From assembly GCA_028826165.1 (NCBI GenBank), contig JAPDFW010000116.1:1-64000 (forward strand): 64,000 nucleotides of DNA. The letters run 5' to 3'. The notes under the pieces were generated by a model. It ran no database searches. It was not told the DNA's origin and saw only the letters and a program-made list of their open reading frames with translations. The stretch's first letter is position 1; each line of letters begins with the position of its first letter. The position numbers were made by a program, and so were the translations under genes. This document shows positions 6,001 to 44,863 of this stretch, in pieces. This DNA comes from Anaeramoeba ignava BMAN (taxonomy: Eukaryota; Protista; Anaeramoebae).

Positions 6001-9000
6001 CCACTTATAATTGTTGGAAGATTAACAAAATTTCTGAATTGAAGAAATAACATTTTAGAAACATTATCAAAAGTAAGAACATATTTTGATTTTCCTTTTT
6101 TATGTTCTTCAATTAATTCTTTATCAATTTCTTTTGGATTAAGAGTAGAGAAAAATTCGAAAATTCTTTCAATTTCTTCTTTAGAATTGAAAGTATCAGA
6201 AAATTTTGATTCTACTAAACCTAAATTTATTGTTATTTTTTCAGGATTGTATAATAAGGGAGAATTTTTTGAATATTTTTTTATAAATATTCCAAATCCT
6301 GAAAAAAAATGATCTAATTTTTGTTCGTTTGTTGATTTAATTGAAATTGGAATAATATTTTCATTTTCATTTTTAAATTGTAATTTTGGAAGAAAAGTAT
6401 AAAAATTATCAAAAATATTTTTGTTTTCTGATAATAAAGGAAATAAAATAAATCTTGAAATTGAAAGAAACCAACTTTTAAGGATTGATCTTGTTAATTT
6501 TTTCGATTTCTTTTCTTTGACTTTTAGAAAATCCCATTCTAATATTAAATTAATAAATACTTTTAATGAATTCCAAAATTGTGATAATAATCTAAATGTG
6601 TAAATATTTTTCATATTTCCTCTATTAAATTGATTTAAAACAATAGAAATATTTTTTTCAATTAATTCAATAAATCTTTTTGGATTTGGTTTATCATCTT
6701 TTTCTAATATTTCTTTAATATTTTCAATTCTATCTGGTTCATTTAGAATTTGTTTATCTTCTAATTTTATCATTAAATTTGCAACTTTTTTTAATTTTTC
6801 ATCTTCTTTTTCAATTATTTTTTGATTTGAATCAATTTCATAATTTTGGAAAACAAAAGAATCTTTGTTATAATTTAAATAATGTAAATTAAATTGATAA
6901 AGTGGATAAAAAGAATTCCACATTTTTTCATTTCGATTTTCATTTTGATTTTGAATTTGATTTTGATTTTGATTTTGATTTTGATTTTGATTTTGATTTT
7001 GAGTTTGAATTTGATTTTGATTTTGATTTTGATTTTGATTTTGATTTTGATTTTGATTTTGATTTTGATTTTGATTTTGATTTTGATTTTGATTTTGATT
7101 TTGATTTTGATTTTGATTTTGATTTTGATTTTGATTTTGATTTTGATTTTGATTTTGATTTTGATTTTGATTTTGATTTTGATTTTGATTTTGATTTTGA
7201 TACTTTTCTTGTTTATTAGGAATTTCAAATAAAAGAATTATGTTTGATTGAATATTCCAACAAAGAGATTTTGATGATTTTGGATTTGAATTTTCAATAG
7301 ATCCCCACATTGTAAGTTGCCAAATTGCATCTGAAATTTCAATAGAACATTTATTTGGAAATTCAATATGAATGAATATTGTTTCTTTTTCTTTTTCTTT
7401 TTCTTTTAATTGATTTGTAATTTGATTTAATTTAGAAATCATTTCAGAAATTGTTCCTTTATTAAGTTGAATAATTTGATATTTATAATTATTTGTTTTT
7501 CCTTTAAAATCAAAACAAAATTTTCTAATTTGAAAACTTTTTCCTTCACCTGTAAAATTTGAATAAAAAACATAAATATTGCGATAAATTGGTGAACATT
7601 CGATAATTTGTTTCAGATTTTTGTTAATTTCATCTCCAAAATCAATATTTAATTCTCCTTCTTGAAGTAAAGAAGATAAAAATGTTTTTTCTTGTTTTTG
7701 ATAAAATTCAAATATTATCATTGGTATTTTTGTAACGAAATCAATTGAATTTGTTTCAGAAATTAGAATATTTTGACATTTTTGAGATAATCTATCAGCA
7801 TGAATTATTGAAAATAATAATGAAAAAGAACCATTATTTTCTTGTATTTCATTATAATATTTATAAATTGAGAAAAAATTAATTATATCTTCAGGTTTTG
7901 TATTTGAATTACAAATCAAAATTTGTTCTCTTAATGGAAAATATTTTAAATATAAATAATAAATCATTGTAACATAATTCAATATTTTTGAATCTTCTGT
8001 AATTTTTATAATAAATATTTTTGGATTTCGAATTGATCCATCTCTTTTTTCATCGATTTGTTTTTTCAATTTAAATTGGATTTTTTGAAGATTTATGTTT
8101 TTTTCTATAATTGATAAATTTATTTTGGAAATGGAATCTTGAATAAATTTTAAGGAGAAACCTTCTTCAATTTTTTGAAAAAAAGATTTTGAAAAATCAA
8201 TTAAATCAATTTTTTCAAATTCTGGATTTATATATTCCATAAAATTTATTTTGTTAGTTCTTTTTTCTCCATTAATTAATCTGATAATTGATTTAAAAAT
8301 TTCATTTTGATTTTGATTTTGATTTTGATTTTGATTTTGATTTTGATAAATTAAAAGAAGTTGTTGATTGGTTAAAATTCCTTTTAAAGGTATTTCTTTT
8401 AATTTTTCTTCATCTTCTTTCCATTTTTTAAGATTTTCTTCAATTTTGTTATTAAATTGGTTTAATTCTTCGGAATAATCAAGTTTTTTTGATTTTTTTG
8501 AGTTTTGTTTGATTTTAAAAGGTTTATCAATTTCTTGAATTTTTTGATAATATTGAATTGGAATAAATCTTTTCAAATTTTGATAAATTTTATCAATAGT
8601 TTTAAATAATTCTTCATATTGTTGAATTAAAATATATTCTTTTTTTCGATTTTTTGATTGATTTTCTTGATTATCTCCCAATGCAATTTTTGGTTTTTTA
8701 TCTAATGCAACACTTAACATATTGATAAAATCTTCAATATTTCTTTCATTTGATTTTTCTGTTTGAATAATACATTTAAATAATGGTTCTTTCAAATAAA
8801 AAATTAATTTGCATCCTTTTTCAAAAATATTGGAAATATCTTGAAGTAAATTTGTAGATGAATATGTAAATTGTTGAATATCGAGTAATGGGAAATATTT
8901 AATCAATAATTTTACATCAATTTCTTCTTTTGTTTTTTCTTGAAATTTTATTTTCTTGATTTCATTTTGTAAAGAATGAAGATCATTAAATTTGTTTGAT

Positions 9001-37009: not shown

Positions 37010-38337
37010 ATGATTTTTACAGAAAAAAATCAAAACAAAAAAAATAAAAACAAAAATACAAAAAATCAAATAATTTCAACACCAAGTCATTTATTAATAA
37101 AAAATTTAACAAAAAACAAAGAAAAAAAAACATTAAAAACTCCATTTGAAGAAAGAAAGCATTTAAAATCTTCAAATTTATCTGCTTATAAATATATGAA
37201 TCCTGATCAAAAAACAGAAAAATTTGAAGAAAAAAGAATAAAATTTTCAGAACAAAAACAAGAATTTCAACCTCATTCATTATTTTCTCAAAATAAATTG
37301 ACAAATTTCGAAAAAAATGAAAAAAATGTTAAATTGGATTCTTCAATAAAAAATACTCCTTATAGAAGAATATTAAGTTCTCATAAAAATAAAAATCCAA
37401 ATAATAATAATAATAATAATCCAAATGAAAAATTTATTTCTGAAAATGAATTTCAACAAAAAATCAAGTTTTTTCAAAATAAAATTGATCAACTTAATCA
37501 AAATAATAAAATTCTTCAAAAAGAATTAGAAAATCAAAAATTATCATTTGAAAAGGAAAAAAACAATTTATTGTTGGATTTAAAAAATTGGCAAGAAAAA
37601 TCAAGAAAATATGAAATGGAAATTGAAAATTTAAAACAAGATGAAAATTTAAAACAAAAAAATCAAAATCTTAATCAAAATATTGATGAATTAGAAACAA
37701 AACTTGCTCAATATGAATCAAGAATTACAAGAGGAGAATTAAATTCAACAACAATAAAGATTCTTCATTTTATTAAAAATCCAGAATTTCTTACTTTTCA
37801 AAAAAAAGAAAAATATCATAAAAATGAAAATCAAAATGAAAATGAAAATGAAAATGAAAATGAAATGAAAATCTAAATCAAAATCAAAATCAAAATCAAA
37901 ATCAAAATCAAAATCAAAAGAAAAATCAAAAGAAAAAGAAGAACAAAAATAAAAATAAAATTGAAAAGAAAAATCAAACAAAATCACTTCAACAATTAGA
38001 AGAAGAATTAGAACTAAATCAAATTCGTTTGGATCGTTTGAAAAAAATGTTCAAACAAAAAATTCAAGAATTTAGAGAAGCTTGTTATGTTTTATTTGGA
38101 TTTAGAATTGATATGATTGGTCAACAATTTAAATTAAAATCAATGTTTGCTGAAAAACCAAGTGATACATTATTATTCTCAAAACAAGATGATGATGAAT
38201 TTATTCTTTTGGAAAATGAATACTCAAAATCACTTAGTAAAGAAATTCATGCTTTTTTAACAACATGTCATTCAATTCCTGCTTTTTTAAGTCATTTAAC
38301 ATTAGATTTATTTAATAATCAAACTTATTTGAATTAA
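37010..38337 (+). CDS. MAD1L1: Spindle checkpoint protein MAD1 (short form); one-base deletion near 37864
   Basis: MAD2-interacting motif TTIKILHFIKNP, then RLKKMFKQKIQEFREACYVLFGFRID (RLK motif) and SIPAFLSHLTLDLF at the C-terminus. Adding one A at about 37864 joins the two ORFs. Confidence 0.88.
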
Positions 38338-38382: not shown

Positions 38383-41233
38383 TTATTTTTTGGATTTGTA
38401 TTTAGTGACTAAACCAATTCCTACTAAGCAAATTAAAGAAACTAAATGATTTCCTGAAAAATGAAAAGATGTAAAATTTTCATTTTGATTTTCATTTTGA
38501 TTTTCTTTTAAATTTCCTTTTAAATTTTCTTTTTCAATTTTTTTCAAATTTTCTTCTTCTTCTTTTATTTCTTTGTTTATTAAATTTTCTAAATCTTCTG
38601 GTATTTCAATTTCTGGATCTATTTTTCTGGCTTTATCTAAATATTCTTTTGCTTTTTTGATATTTTTCTTTATTCCTCTTCCAAATAAATACATAACACA
38701 AAGATTTTTCATTGCTTCACTATTTAAATCAAATTCACTTGAATATTCCCAAAATTCAACAGCAAATTCATCACTTTTTTGAATTCCAAATCCTTAAAAA
38801 AAAAAAAGTGGAACAGAAAATTTTTTAAATAAAATTTCTTTTGATTCCTTTTTGTTTTGTTTTGTTTTGTTTTGTTTTGTTTTGTTTTGTTTTGTTTTTA
38901 AATTGAATCAAACCTCCTTCAAAATATAAATGTCCTAAATTTAAAGCTGCTAATGGATATCCATTTTGTTTTGCCAATTTATAATATTTTTCAGCTTGAA
39001 GGAAATTTTTCTCACAAATTTCTCCAAAATGATAATTAATTCCAATCTAATTTAAAAAAAAAACAATTTAAAAATTTGATAATGATTTAATATCATTCAA
39101 ATACCATAAATTGTGCTAAAGAATTGTTTTTTTTGGCAAGTGATTCCCAAAATTGAAAAGCTTTTTGAAGATCTGGTTGAATATTATAAACTTCTGAACC
39201 ATGTGTATAAATTGAACCAAGTCTTTCTATTGCTGGTAAATTTTGTTTTTCAACACTTTTAACAAGTAATTCATATGATTTTTCAATTTCTCCTTGTGTC
39301 AGAAGGAATTGTGAAAGAATAAATCTTTAAAACAAATTTTAATTTTAATTTTTATTTTTAATTTCATTTCAATTTCATTTTAATTTTAATTCGATTTTAT
39401 TTCAATTTTATTTCAATTTTAATTTCAATTTTATTTTAATTTTATTTCAATTTTAATTTTAATTTTATTTCAATTTTAATTTCATTTCAATTTCAATTTC
39501 AATTTTATTTCAATTTTATTTCAATTTCAATTCAATTTTATTTTATTTCAATTTTAATTTTAATTTTAATTTTAATTTTAATTTTAATTTCATTTCAATT
39601 TCATTTCAATTTTAATTTCATTTCAATTTTAATTTTATTTCAATTTTATTTCAATTTTAATTTTAATTTTAATTTTAATTTTAATTTCAATTTTATTTCA
39701 ATTTTATTTTAATTTTAATCCAATTTTATTTTATTTCAATTTTATTTTCAATTTTATTTTCAATTTTAATTTCAATTTTAATTTCAATTTTAATTTCAAT
39801 TTTATTTCAATTTTATTCCAATTTTATTTCAATTTTATTTTAATTTCAATTTTAATTTTATTTCAATTTCAATTTCAATTTTAATTTTAATTTTAATTTA
39901 ATTTCTATTTCAATTTCTATTTTAATTTCAATTTTAATTTCAATTTTAATTTCAATTTTAATTTCAATTTTAATTTTATTTCAATTTTATTTCAATTTTA
40001 ATTTCAATTTTAATTCAATTTTATTTCAATTTTATTTTAATTTATTTCAATTTATTTCAATTTCAATTTTAATTTTAATTTTAATTTTAATTTCAATTTT
40101 AATTTTATTTCAATTTCATTCCAATTTTAATTTAATTTTATTTTAATTTCATTTCAATTTTATTTCAATTTTATTTCAATTTTATTTCAATTTTATTTTA
40201 ATTTTATTTTTAATTTTATTTCAATTTTAATTTTAATTTTATTTCAATTTTAATTTCATTTCAATTTTAATTCAATTTTAATTCAATTTTATTTCAATTT
40301 TATTTCAATTTTATTTCAATTTTAATTTCCAATTTTAATTTCAATTTTATTTTTAATTTTAATTTTATTTCAATTTTATTTTAATTTTATTTTAATTTCA
40401 ATTTTAATTTTATTTCAATTTTTAATTTCAATTTTAATTTTAATTTTAATTCAATTTTATTTCAATTTCAATTTTAATTTTAATTTTATTTTAATTTTAT
40501 TTTAATTTTAATTTTATTTTTAATTTTAATTTTATTTCAATTTTATTTCAATTTTATTTCAATTTTATTTCAATTTTATTTTTAATTTTAATTTTAATTT
40601 TATTTCAATTTTAATTTTATTTCAATTTCTATTTCAATTTCAATTTCAATTTTATTTCAATTTTAATTTCAATTTTATTTCAATTTTATTTCAATTTTAA
40701 TTTCATTTTAATTTTAATTTTAATTTTAATTTTAATTTTAATTTTAATTTATTTTCAATTTTATTTTAATTTTATTTTAATTTTATTTCAATTTTATTTC
40801 AATTTTATTTCAATTTCAATTTTCAATTTTAATTTCAATTTTATTTCAATTTTAATTTTAATTTCAATTTTAATTTTAATTTTAATTTCAATTTTATTTC
40901 AATTTCAAATTAATTCCAAATTAAAATAAAATTGTTCCTGTTTTACTGAGAATGTGAATCAATCTCTCCAGAAAGTTCTGAAATGATTAATACAGGCCAA
41001 ATCTTTGATTCTTTTTTTATTAATTTTATAATCATTATTGTTGAATTTTGAATTGATTGAATAAAAGAAATTTCATGTTTATCAATTTTTGCAAATAATT
41101 TTCCTTTAATTAACATCTCATTTTTTGTTTTAACAATAATCGTTGATTCTGTAATTGAAACTTCTGGTTTTTCATTTTGAAAAATATCTAAAAAGATTTC
41201 AATTTCAATTTCATTTTGTTGAAATGAATACAT
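38383..41233 (-). CDS. CS/Hsp20-like domain + SEL1/TPR-like repeats + C-terminal tail anchor (4 exons)
   Basis: Exon 1 (41233-40947): YSFQQN..LIKGKLFAKID..IKLIKKESKIWPVL, a CS/NudC-like fold. Intron 40946-39325. Later exons give AIERLGSIYTHG..DLQKAFQFW, IGINYHFG..AEKYYKLA, AALNLGHLYFEG and AMKNLCVMYLFGRGIKKNIKKAKEYL (SEL1 repeats). The protein ends HLVSLICLVGIGLVTKYKSKK. Confidence 0.8.
39330..40915. repeat. Degenerate intronic microsatellite (TTTCAA/TTTTAA/TTTTATTTCAA)n
   Basis: Fills the 1.6-kb first intron of the CS-SEL1 gene. Confidence 0.9.
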
Positions 41234-41376
41234 TAATAAAAAAAATAAATGAAAATAAAAAAATGAAAAAAATAAATTTTGTTTTTTTTTTATTTAATTT
41301 TTATTTTAAAAAAAAATTTGAATAATTTTCTTTTTTTTGTTTAATTTGTTTTCTTCTTTTTTTTTTGCTTTTTTTT

Positions 41377-41437
41377 TTTTTGATTTCAAGAATTTCCATT
41401 CATTTCTGATTTGTGGAAAAACTTTCATTTTCAAAAA
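41377..41437 (-). promoter_or_regulatory. Eukaryotic type II SECIS element
   Basis: Minus strand reads UUUUUGA-AA-AUGA-A-AGUUUUUCCA-C-AAA-UCA-GAAA-UGA-A-UGGAAAUUCU-UGA-AA-UCAAAAA. This gives helix I, an AUGA/GA core, a 10-bp helix II with two U.U mismatches, an apical AAA and a GAAA-capped mini-helix. It lies about 200 nt downstream of an in-frame UGA. Folded by hand. Confidence 0.8.
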
Positions 41438-41602
41438 GAAAGAAAACAAGAAAAAAGAAGAAAGAAAGAAAGAAAGAAAGAAAAAAGTTTGTTTTAAATT
41501 TTGAATTAAATTTTGAATTAAATCTTAAATTAAATTTTGAATTAAATCTTGAATTGAATCTTAAATTGAATTTTGAATTAAATCTTGAATTGAATTTTGT
41601 TT

Positions 41603-41881
41603 TTAATCGTTTCTTCTAAAACAAACTTTACTATTTGGAGATCATCCTCCATAATTTGCTTCATCTTCATTATCAATTTCACTTTCACTTTCACTTTCAC
41701 TTTCATTTTCTGAATTTGATTCTGAATCTGATATTAAAGGAAATTCATCTTTTTTCTTTTTAATTCTTTTTTTTTGATTTCCATTTTGATTTTGATGGCA
41801 AGGTAATGAATCTAAATCAAATTTTTTACCACAACAAGCTGATAATAAAAGCATAACTCCACCAATTAATAATCACGCCAT
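41603..41881 (-). CDS. Small candidate selenoprotein (~92 aa, two in-frame UGA)
   Basis: ATG GCG TGA TTA... at 41881 is in frame with ORF 41642-41854. A second TGA follows YGG (41644-41642), and the next stop is TAA at 41605-41603. A SECIS lies downstream. Confidence 0.65.
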
Positions 41882-41984
41882 TTTAATTTGTAAAAAAAAA
41901 ATGAAATTTTCTTTTTCTTTTTTTTCTTTTTTTTTCCTTTTATTTTTAAACCCCTTTAACACGTGTAAATTATTTTTTATTTTT

Positions 41985-42330
41985 ATTAATTTTATTTCAT
42001 TATTTAAATCTAAATTAAATAATAATTTACTTATATTTTATTTATAAATAATATCTAAATATAAAATATTTGATTAAAGCTTATAAAATATTATTTAAAA
42101 ATTAATATTTCTTTATTTAATATATTTTATTAACTTTATTTCATTATTTAAATATAAATTAAATAATAATTTACTTATATTTTATCTATAAATAATATTT
42201 AAATATAAAATATTTAATTAAAGCTTATAAAATATTATTTCAAAATCAATATTTCTTTGTTTAATATATTTTATTAATTTTATTTCATTATTTAAATTTA
42301 AATTAAATAATAATTTATTTATAATTTGTT
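41985..42330. repeat. ~144-bp AT-rich tandem repeat, about 2.5 copies
   Basis: TTAAAGCTTATAAAATATTATTT recurs at about 42074 and 42218. Confidence 0.7.
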
Positions 42331-42581
42331 TAAAAGTTATGTAATTAGAATGAATTTAAATTTAATTATTATTAATTTCTGTTTTCAATTTTTTTATTTT
42401 TTTGATTTTTCTTTTTTTCAATTTAATCTTCTTTTTAATAATATTTTTATTTTTAAAATTCTAAAATTAAAATAAAATTTAAAATTAAATTTGTTTCTTA
42501 TTTATTGATTTGAAGAATTTAATTTGATTGAAAGTAAATTAAAATTGAATTAAATTTTGAAAAAAAAATGAAAAATAGTTT

Positions 42582-44863
42582 TTAAATGAAATAAGTTTCA
42601 AGTTCATCAACAATCCATTTATTAAAAGAACCAGCTAAATAACTTTCAGCTTCATTTGTTTCATATTTAATTCCATTAGGTAGATTGTAACTTTCACCGA
42701 AATTTGAACAAACAGGTTGTAAATTAGAATTTAACCGAATATCAGCTATAAATATTTTAATAAATATAAATAATTAATTTTAATAATAATTAATAATAAT
42801 TTAATTTAAAATTTATTTTATTTTAATTTAAAATAATAATATTATTTATTATATTAATATTTTTGGATTATTTATTAATTTAATTTTAATTATAATAATA
42901 ATTATTTATTAAATATAAATTATTTACCAACTATTTTAATAAAGATAAATAATTAATTTGAATAATAATTAATAATTTAATTTAAAATTAATTTTATTTT
43001 AAATTGAAATAATAATATTATTTATTATATTAATATTTTGGATTATTTATTAATTTAATTTTAATTATAATAATAAATATTTATTAAATAATAAAATTAT
43101 TTATATTTACATCCAAAAACTGGACCATAACTTAAATGATAACCAATTGCATATTTTTCCATTTCTTGTTTAATTGTAAACTTCTCTGGTTTTCTATCTC
43201 CTTTATTATTTCTTAATGAAAAAATAAATGCATTTGAATCTTTAATAAATCCATCATCATCATTTCTATCTTCTTCTCTCCATTTTGATTTATCATTTGT
43301 CCATCCAACTTGAGTAAAACCTCCAAAAATAAAATTATCTTTTGTTTTGATAATAACTAATGTTTTTCCTTTATTATCAACTGCTTTATGCCAATTTTGA
43401 CAATCAAATCCATCTCTTTTTGCTGAAAATCCTTTTTTCATTTTAGAAAAAAAATCATTATCATTTATCCATTCTTGTAATTTCTTAACATATTCTTCTT
43501 CTGTAATAATTTCTGAATTTGAAAATTGAGGAAAAATCTTCAATAATTTATTTTGATTTTGATTTTGATTTTGAATTTGATTTTGATTTGATTCTTTTTG
43601 AATTTTTTTGATTTTTTGTTTCTCTTTTTCAATTTCTTTTTCAAATGATAATTTAAGATTTTGAATTTCTTCATCTTTTTGTTTGAGAATTTTATCTTTC
43701 TTTTCAATTTCTTTTTTGAGTTTCTCTTGAATCTCTTTTTTTTCTTTTTCTTTATTTTCGTTTTCTTTTTCTTTCTTTTCAATTTCTTTTTCAAATTCCG
43801 ATTTCAGATTTTGATTTTCTTTTTCTTTCTTCTTATTTTCAGATTCAAATGATTTGATTTTTTTATCTTTTTCTTTAATTCTTTTATCTCTTCTTTGAAT
43901 TTTCTTTTCATTTTCTTTAATTTGTTTATCATTTTCTTGAATTTTCTTTTCATTTTCTTGAATTTTCTTTTCTTTTTCTTTGATTTTTGTTTGATTTTCT
44001 TGATCTTGAATTTCAAAAATAGTTCTTTCAAAATGAATTAAAAAAGAATTTGGAAGAAAAATATCAAATTGTTTTAATTTATCAAAATCTTGTTTTGAAA
44101 TTGAATCTTTATCAAATAATGAAAAAAAAGAATGAAATAATCTTTTCTTTGCATTCATTTTGTGTTCATATTTCTTTAAATTTAATCTTTGATTTCTTTT
44201 TTTAATCCAATTATCCAAAAATTGAAAAAAATCAAATTGAAAAATTTCTTTTTTTTCTTGTTTAAATTGAATAAATTTGATAATTTCTTCTTTAGTTAAA
44301 TTGAATAAATTTTCATTATTTTGAATTTGGGAAAAATTTTGATTTATTAATTCAAAACATTTTATTTCAATTTCATTTGAATTTAAATTTCGATTTTGGA
44401 ATAAAAATTGGAAAAAATTTGAATAATTAATTGAATTTAAAATTTTTTTTTGAATAATTTCTTTCAATAAATTTAATTTAAAATAAATTGAAATTTCCAT
44501 TAATTGGATAAGATTTTCTTGATTCTCAAAAGAAATATTTCCATAATAAATATAACTCAAAATTGATTCCATTTCTTTTTTATTGAATTGATTTAAAGAA
44601 ATAGAAAGAGATTCTTGCCTTAATGACTCATTAAAAAAAGGAGATCTTGAAGATAAAATTGATTTATGAACTTTAATTTCAAAAGGATTTGATTTATTCT
44701 CAACAAAAATTGAAAAATCTTTAAATGAATTTCCATTTAAAAGGTTTGAATAATCTTTAATTAAATTTTTTGTTACTTTTTTTTCTAAATTTTTCATTTC
44801 ATTTTCATTTTCATTTTGATTTGCATTTTCAATTTGGTTATTATCATTATTATTATTATCCAT
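42582..44863 (-). CDS. BTB/POZ-coiled coil-TLDc protein, copy 1
   Basis: BTB (KDFSIFVE..IKVHKSILSSRSPFF..ILSYIYYG), an EK-rich coiled coil, and TLDc (GFSAKRDGF..WHKAVDNKGKTLVIIKT..IFGGFT..AFIFSL..GPVFG). Exon 1 is 44863-43111, a putative 3-nt exon TTG is 42930-42928, and the last exon is 42745-42582 (DIRLNSNLQPVCSNFG..YLAGSFNKWIVDELETYFI*). Confidence 0.9.

Follow-up and report, generated by a model that had tools for sequence, protein, structure and literature searches.

The question raised by this locus is whether a short frame on the minus strand of an extremely AT-rich stretch of Anaeramoeba ignava BMAN DNA, which contains an in-frame UGA at its third codon and another near its end, is a gene for a selenoprotein, and which of the two UGA codons would then be read as selenocysteine (Sec). 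In eukaryotes, the criterion for such recoding is a SECIS element in the 3′ UTR of the same strand with an AUGA, an unpaired AA and a GA core, lying more than about 50–100 nt from the UGA, and conserved UGA positions are the usual comparative criterion for a selenoprotein. The stretch analyzed here (hereafter the window; 64,000 nt, contig C117) has a GC content of 3–32% in 2-kb steps and belongs to an assembly of 42.8 Mb in 147 contigs, which was the genome searched.

The locus very probably holds a gene, absent from the annotation, whose product of 92 residues has Sec at one or both of the UGA codons (codons 3 and 80). The reading that we favor, and regard as probable, is that of a single-exon gene at 41881–41603 encoding a selenoprotein predicted to be largely disordered, in which UGA-80 is recoded and probably UGA-3 too, with one diverged paralogue and a family so far known only from this genome. 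The family is very probably new, and the recoding would very probably proceed by the known SECIS mechanism, with the early UGA as its unusual part. If this is true, a new eukaryotic selenoprotein family is found in a deep-branching anaerobic lineage.

The coding frame and its composition

The candidate frame lies on the minus strand from 41881 to 41603 as a single exon of 92 codons followed by TAA. It begins with ATG (41881–41879), GCG and TGA (41875–41873), continues with 76 sense codons to a second TGA (41644–41642), and ends after 12 further sense codons with TAA (41605–41603), the 92 codons including two TGA, no TAA and no TAG. The coordinates were rechecked, and the recomputed translation with UGA as Sec is identical to the string given by the initial annotation. 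The features of the frame are as follows.

41603–41881, minus strand: coding frame (translation), with the first ATG (41881–41879) in the context AAATTAAAATG
41873–41875, minus strand: UGA codon 3, to be read as Sec-3 or as the end of a uORF of two codons, with a TGA at the same codon in the second locus described below (L006)
41852–41854, minus strand: second in-frame ATG (codon 10), the alternative start in the uORF reading, in the context GTTATG, weaker than that of the first ATG
41642–41644, minus strand: UGA codon 80 in a Y-G-G-U context, predicted Sec, followed by 12 codons including Cys-87

The frame has a GC content of 26.9%, whereas the 5′ flank has 8.7% and the 3′ UTR 16.4%. GC reaches 37% in the 27 nt that open the frame, before the second ATG, and is 27.8% in the tail beyond the second TGA, so that GC content is coding-like over both TGA codons. 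The limits of this GC island coincide exactly with the first ATG and the TAA, and the island includes the codons ahead of ATG-10 as well as those beyond UGA-80. A splice donor (A/GTAAAG near 41631) that the initial annotation had raised as a possible change to the C-terminus was rejected, as the intron would be 16 nt long with an implausible frame, and no support for it was found.

The neighboring genes include a Mad1-like gene (by eye) at 37010–38337 on the plus strand, exons that encode Sel1-like repeats and a hydrophobic segment at the C-terminus (38383–38977, minus strand), and a minus-strand gene at 40943–41233, which starts at 41233, ~140 nt past the SECIS, in a very tight intergenic space.

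The SECIS element and the 3′ UTR

The 3′ region of the candidate contains two features, on the same strand as the frame.

41438–41602, minus strand: 3′ UTR from the stop codon to the SECIS, consisting of a 12/36-nt tandem repeat plus a (CTTT)n tract
41376–41437, minus strand: type II SECIS, identified by Rfam, by the minimum-free-energy fold and by a genome-specific model (R2)

The type II SECIS placed at 41437–41377 by the initial annotation is present on this strand, and Rfam SECIS_1 matches 41437–41376 along the whole model (1–64) with 24.2 bits (E 0.058 in 1.3 kb), a score that lies under the gathering score of 35. The minimum-free-energy fold of the hairpin has the SECIS shape, with a helix I of 7 bp (41437–41431 paired with 41383–41377), an internal loop in which the core AUGA (41428–41425) stands opposite the 3′ UGA (41388–41386), a helix II of 11 positions, two of them U-U mismatches, an AAA (41412–41410) 12 nt after the ATGA, and an apex formed by a 3-bp mini-stem closed by a GAAA loop. 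The element lies 165 nt 3′ of the stop codon, and its core is 216 nt from the UGA at codon 80 and 447 nt from the UGA at codon 3. Strand, core parts and UGA distances all agree with the eukaryotic SECIS criterion, the Rfam score being below the gathering threshold. Between the stop codon and the hairpin, Tandem Repeats Finder reports rows at 41494–41599 and 41435–41487.

A genome-wide Rfam scan yielded five SECIS elements besides that of the candidate, and four of the five adjoin known families, namely three SelW/Rdx-like genes and a thioredoxin reductase ending in GCUG. The spacing of ATGA and AAA is 12 nt in all six elements compared, and most of the six have an AAAUC apex, which the candidate shares with the SelW-like and thioredoxin reductase elements. 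A covariance model trained only on the four known-family elements of this genome, with the candidate left out (R2), gave the candidate hairpin 32.7 bits (E about 1e-4 in 6 kb), which is the top match in the window, with the next match 10 bits lower, and which also exceeds every score in 151 kb of other loci. The hairpin alone is suggestive and not decisive, because about one chance match at 32.7 bits is expected genome-wide (extrapolated to 86 Mb, both strands). Elsewhere in the window, a match at 8150–8195 (22.6 bits with R2) was rejected, having neither an ATGA core nor an ORF.

Selenocysteine machinery of the genome

The initial annotation had made its reading depend on the presence of Sec machinery, and tRNA-Sec, SepSecS and SPS2 are all three present. 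The genome search found tRNA-Sec with 70 bits, above the cut-off, and SepSecS with 404 bits. The SelD/SPS2 gene (G000:C64:1028999-1030481) has three exons, the first of which contains a single in-frame TGA, and is probably a selenoprotein gene itself. In addition, the large thioredoxin reductase encoded at L005 (G000:C2), upstream of 449778, ends in G-C-U-G-stop and has its own SECIS; a long low-complexity 3′ UTR precedes this SECIS. UGA is not generally reassigned in the genome: TGG is the Trp codon in ordinary genes, and TGA ends 4 of the 15 long ORFs in the window. In a related species, A. pumila, two tRNA-Sec genes were reported (one preprint), and beyond this remark no description of Anaeramoeba selenoproteins was found in the searchable literature.

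A second locus with the same layout

The fifth of the SECIS elements found by Rfam, on contig C73 (locus L006), has no known gene before it, and this locus came up independently via its own SECIS. Its frame reads M-C-U-M-L-F-A-C-C-F-G ... S-E-C-S-E-G-U-N-stop and has 64 codons. Both loci have the identical 11-nt start context, followed by one codon (NNN) and then TGA; residue 2 is small in both (Ala in the candidate, Cys in L006). An Ala-Cys-Cys motif follows a few residues after UGA-3, with a further Cys about ten residues on, and both proteins have a charged low-complexity middle and a Gly-UGA (GGA TGA) near the end. Similarly, a type II SECIS lies 90–165 nt past the stop in each, that of L006 scoring 22.7 bits with the R2 model, weaker than that of the candidate. 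The two differ in length (64 vs 92 residues) and in the charge of the middle, which is basic in L006 and acidic in the candidate. L006 is also without the LLIGGV insertion that follows UGA-3 in the candidate, and has only one residue after its second UGA, in contrast to 12 in the candidate.

The pattern AAATG-NNN-TGA-N{3,33}-GCN-TGY-TGY has five matches genome-wide and none in a reversed control, and the candidate and L006 are the only two of the five that are in frame and open. The pieces between the two UGA codons give a collinear local alignment with a score of 70, compared with 26.9 +/- 5.2 in shuffled controls (0/2000 reach 70) and 25 for the reversed sequence, and p = 0.001 is obtained with block shuffles in which the regional composition is preserved. 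BLASTP with composition correction showed no significant similarity between the candidate and L006, both of which are low-complexity proteins. We conclude that the two are diverged paralogues with conserved UGA positions, and since L006 has the same odd layout, they would form a small selenoprotein family, in which two weak single cases are linked into one.

As to the homologues with Sec or Cys at the UGA positions that the initial annotation proposed to look for, L006 keeps UGA-3 and the Gly-UGA near the end, and neither an orthologue nor a Cys homologue was found. No orthologue being found, the conservation of the UGA positions is that between two paralogues inside one genome. A Cys version of the start pattern has no matches genome-wide, and two matches to the start pattern considered as third members (L032 and a locus on C8) were rejected as the antisense of ordinary genes. 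The suggestion of a new selenoprotein family, made by the initial annotation, is supported by the Sec machinery of the genome and by a diverged paralogue with both UGA codons and a SECIS.

The promoter region

Two elements were recognized upstream of the first ATG.

41892–41906, minus strand: TTTCATTTTTTTTTT, promoter-proximal and initiator-like, with its TCA 21 nt before the first ATG
41959–41966, no strand assigned: ACACGTGT, a G-box-like palindrome that precedes the ATG by 77 nt and may be a transcription-factor site

The motif that the initial annotation had noted upstream of the start, TTTCATTTT (41906–41892), exists as described, yet genes of this genome generally have it in a promoter-proximal position, and it is not specific to the candidate. 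For example, TTTTCATTTTT occurs 15–50 nt upstream of the ATGs of several unrelated genes, often in tandem, at 44863 (minus), 37010 (plus), 12323 (plus) and 14154 (plus), and about 25 nt before ATG 1189 of a SelK-like gene (L034). It is probably an initiator or core-promoter motif of the genome, and transcription of the candidate would start at TTTCATTTTTTTTTT.

The palindrome is rare. The copy at 41959–41966 is the only CACGTG in the 64-kb window and in some thirty other 3-kb loci, and ACACGTGT has 49 copies in total in the 42.8 Mb of the genome, the chance of a copy less than 200 nt from a given start being about 2e-4. L006 has a copy at its positions 2004–2011, 157 nt before its ATG. Other copies lie 60–180 nt upstream of genes, in low-GC flanks (loci L041, L042, L045, L048, L066, L068 and L081), and the genes behind ACACGTGT include a thioredoxin-reductase-like gene, an NADH-oxidase/CoA-disulfide-reductase-like gene and a 6-phosphogluconate dehydrogenase gene, as well as a bZIP factor, a cathepsin, two tandem ML-domain genes and a PB1 gene. 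The set may be a redox or oxygen-stress regulon driven by bZIP factors through the G-box, and the candidate, sharing ACACGTGT with thiol- and oxygen-redox genes, might be expressed in a redox or oxygen-stress program. The association with the thioredoxin-reductase-like, NADH-oxidase-like and 6-phosphogluconate dehydrogenase genes is a testable lead to such a regulon in an anaerobe.

No third family member was found at the 47 other ACACGTGT sites, and a SECIS-like match at L045 was rejected, lying inside the ordinary bZIP gene. Directly upstream of the promoter region of the candidate, a 144-nt unit is repeated 2.5 times with 92% identity (41970–42332).

Searches for relatives

Searches beyond the genome returned no relatives of the candidate in a word search with a 76-residue piece, no match in exact look-ups of both ORFs, where some of the collections leave out the records of this genome, and no relatives with phmmer among 1.84 billion representative proteins, a comparison in which a short low-complexity query has little power. 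The only phmmer matches were two repeat proteins with the common stretch C-G-x-K-x-D-L-D-x-x-x-C-H. Scans of the ESM Atlas and of JGI metagenomes likewise gave no relatives, again with queries whose shortness and low complexity leave little power, and a search by synteny through the first exon of the downstream neighbor found nothing. Pfam-A hmmscan assigned the candidate to no family at E up to 10, and in particular not to PF10961, PF06936 or Rdx. A six-frame search with PF10961 gave no match and is uninformative, since the control was likewise silent.

Decoding of the UGA codons and alternative readings

The role of UGA-3 is the most interesting point of the gene. We take it to be Sec-3, which is probable if well short of assured; that it serves as the stop of a uORF or as a gate is unlikely, and under either reading the gene stays a selenoprotein gene. 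The uORF reading, to which a minor but appreciable probability attaches, holds that AUG-GCG-UGA is a two-codon uORF and that the protein starts at ATG 41854 (M-L-L-L-S-A-C-C...) with one Sec at YGG-U, UGA-3 then being a repressive or selenium-sensitive gate and no residue of the mature protein. L006, in which an ATG follows directly upon UGA-3 (ATG TGC TGA ATG), is in keeping with this, as are the M-L-(x)-A-C-C that begins at the later Met in both proteins and the 70-residue ORF beginning at the later Met that the ESM Atlas contains; moreover, cleavage of the hydrophobic N-terminus as a signal peptide, should it occur, would remove a Sec at residue 3. The start context AAAATG that the initial annotation gave for 41881 is A-rich and strong, and such a context is absent at the later ATGs of both genes, which argues against initiation there. 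The first ATG of the candidate also stands 21 nt past the TCA of TTTTCATTTTT, a placement that other genes share. In L006 and the candidate the spacers are 0 and 18 nt long, which counts as short for eukaryotic re-initiation, and the 18 nt that separate UGA-3 from ATG-10 have a higher GC content than leaders, are in frame and encode L-L-I-G-G-V, hydrophobic codons by which the anchor is extended and the hydrophobic N-terminus becomes 17 residues long. A variant in which UGA-3 is a selenium gate, that is, a SECIS-controlled, in-frame minimal uORF, has a minor probability. In this variant, the frame of the first AUG would meet UGA after two codons, and only ribosomes served by the SECIS complex would insert Sec and go on, primed for the C-terminal UGA; with selenium or Sec-tRNA in short supply, ribosomes would stop after a dipeptide and no 79-residue truncated protein would arise. 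No description of such a gate for any selenoprotein mRNA was found in the literature.

The other readings question the second UGA, the family assignment or the gene itself. That only UGA-3 is recoded, with UGA-80 a true stop and the 12 following codons untranslated, is the most improbable of them, even though TGA is an ordinary stop here and a further stop soon after is expected in AT-rich DNA; a Gly-UGA (GGA TGA) stands in both family members, as in the tails of SelK, SelS and thioredoxin reductase, the tail has a coding-like GC content unlike the UTR, and it supplies a Cys 7 residues past the Sec. We consider it very improbable that there is no gene, only an open frame that arose by chance in low-complexity AT-rich DNA ahead of a hairpin resembling a SECIS by chance. 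ORFs of 70 codons do arise by chance in the window, the SECIS is under the Rfam threshold and homologues outside the genome were not found in the searches, but L006 shares the start, the two UGA codons, the motifs, the SECIS and the promoter palindrome, the limits of the frame are exactly those of the GC island, and the promoter motif lies at the usual distance. Also improbable is a very divergent tail-Sec membrane protein of the SelK/SelS group in place of a family of its own, one of the two assignments that the initial annotation had offered. The small size of the candidate, its N-terminal hydrophobic segment, disordered tail and G-G-U context fit that group, and the SelK-like protein of this genome (L034) ends in Y-G-G-U-R where the candidate has N-Y-G-G-U-S. 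BLASTP showed no similarity between the candidate and L034, however, and no Pfam match to PF10961 or any other family was obtained; the tail is acidic and Ser-rich with no Gly/Pro-rich part, the Sec is 13 residues from the end, and in L006 the hydrophobic N-terminus of ~10 residues is too short for a membrane span.

The favored reading, with Sec at both positions, implies an exceptionally early Sec codon. To our knowledge, Sec at residue 3 has not been described for any selenoprotein. Among the Sec codons that could be found, a conserved UGA-3 would lie nearest the start, the earliest in the literature being position 9, in Euplotes SelW, where one SECIS serves Sec 9 and a second UGA at position 85, and the identity of the SECIS decides which UGA positions are decoded (PMC3737529). 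The gene would offer a natural system for asking how near the start codon SECIS-directed recoding acts and whether an early UGA can be a selenium gate of translation.

The second UGA also lies in the loop of a palindromic hairpin (41636–41651) with a 5-bp stem including three G-C pairs, of which one was found vs 0.0 expected in shuffles; L006 has no hairpin around its second UGA, so this structure may be due to chance.

Predicted protein and proposed mechanism

With the type II SECIS in the 3′ UTR of the mRNA and the Sec machinery of the organism, UGA-80 (YGG-U) would be read as Sec, and UGA-3 would probably be recoded by the same SECIS. The only hydrophobic stretch of the protein is the N-terminus (residues 1–17), and the tail is Lys-rich and then acidic and Ser/Glu-rich. 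The ESM Atlas model of the 70-residue ORF is disordered (pLDDT 0.25). The function of the candidate protein we infer entirely. The short hydrophobic N-terminus with Ala-Cys-Cys could act as a membrane tether or signal sequence, the middle of the protein as a charged, low-complexity linker, and the flexible C-terminal part with U80 and C87 as a redox-active end in the manner of SelK/SelS tails. Because the model is disordered, the N-terminus is the only hydrophobic part and Y-G-G-U has Cys-87 nearby, a micro-protein tethered to the membrane or belonging to the secretory pathway would be expected, with thiol-selenol redox chemistry at its Sec/Cys tail.

Comparison with known selenoprotein families

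SelK has one transmembrane helix, a Gly/Pro-rich tail and Sec 2–3 residues from the C-terminus in a GGU context. Of this layout, the candidate has the GGU context, with 12 residues after the Sec, and neither the helix nor the Gly/Pro-rich tail. SelK and SelS resemble the candidate in their length of ~90–110 residues, a hydrophobic N-terminal part, a disordered cytosolic-type tail, a Gly-Gly-Sec near the C-terminus and a 3′ UTR SECIS. The candidate differs from them in its acidic Ser-rich tail, in the position of the Sec 13 residues from the end, in the extra UGA at codon 3, and in a hydrophobic segment that is short and placed at the very N-terminus. The SelK-like membrane selenoprotein gene of this genome (L034, G000:C137) occupies 1189–1515 and about 110 nt downstream, and ends in Y-G-G-U-R-stop. 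The core of its SECIS seems to be GUGA instead of AUGA, and the element was missed by both the Rfam genome scan and the R2 model. A weak match of the SelK-like protein (E 0.004, 28% identity) lies at G000:C58:318805-318999.

Two other families come near the candidate in some respects. The MSP family has ~170–230 residues, several transmembrane segments and a conserved LVGSUCWP motif (Lobanov et al., 2007; PMC2375036); it is likewise from eukaryotic microbes, has two Sec residues and is predicted to be membrane-associated, but comparison with the published alignment (PMC2375036) led membership to be rejected, as the candidate has neither the LVGSUCWP motif, nor the length of MSP, nor its several transmembrane segments. 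SelW of Euplotes crassus, also a small protein, has its Sec very early and another in-frame UGA close to the end (Turanov et al., 2013; PMC3737529). It differs from the candidate in its Rdx fold, in its CxxU motif and in the use of UGA also for Cys in Euplotes (PMC3737529), and membership in SelW/Rdx was rejected for the candidate, which has no CxxU, no Rdx match in Pfam and a model that is disordered (pLDDT 0.25).
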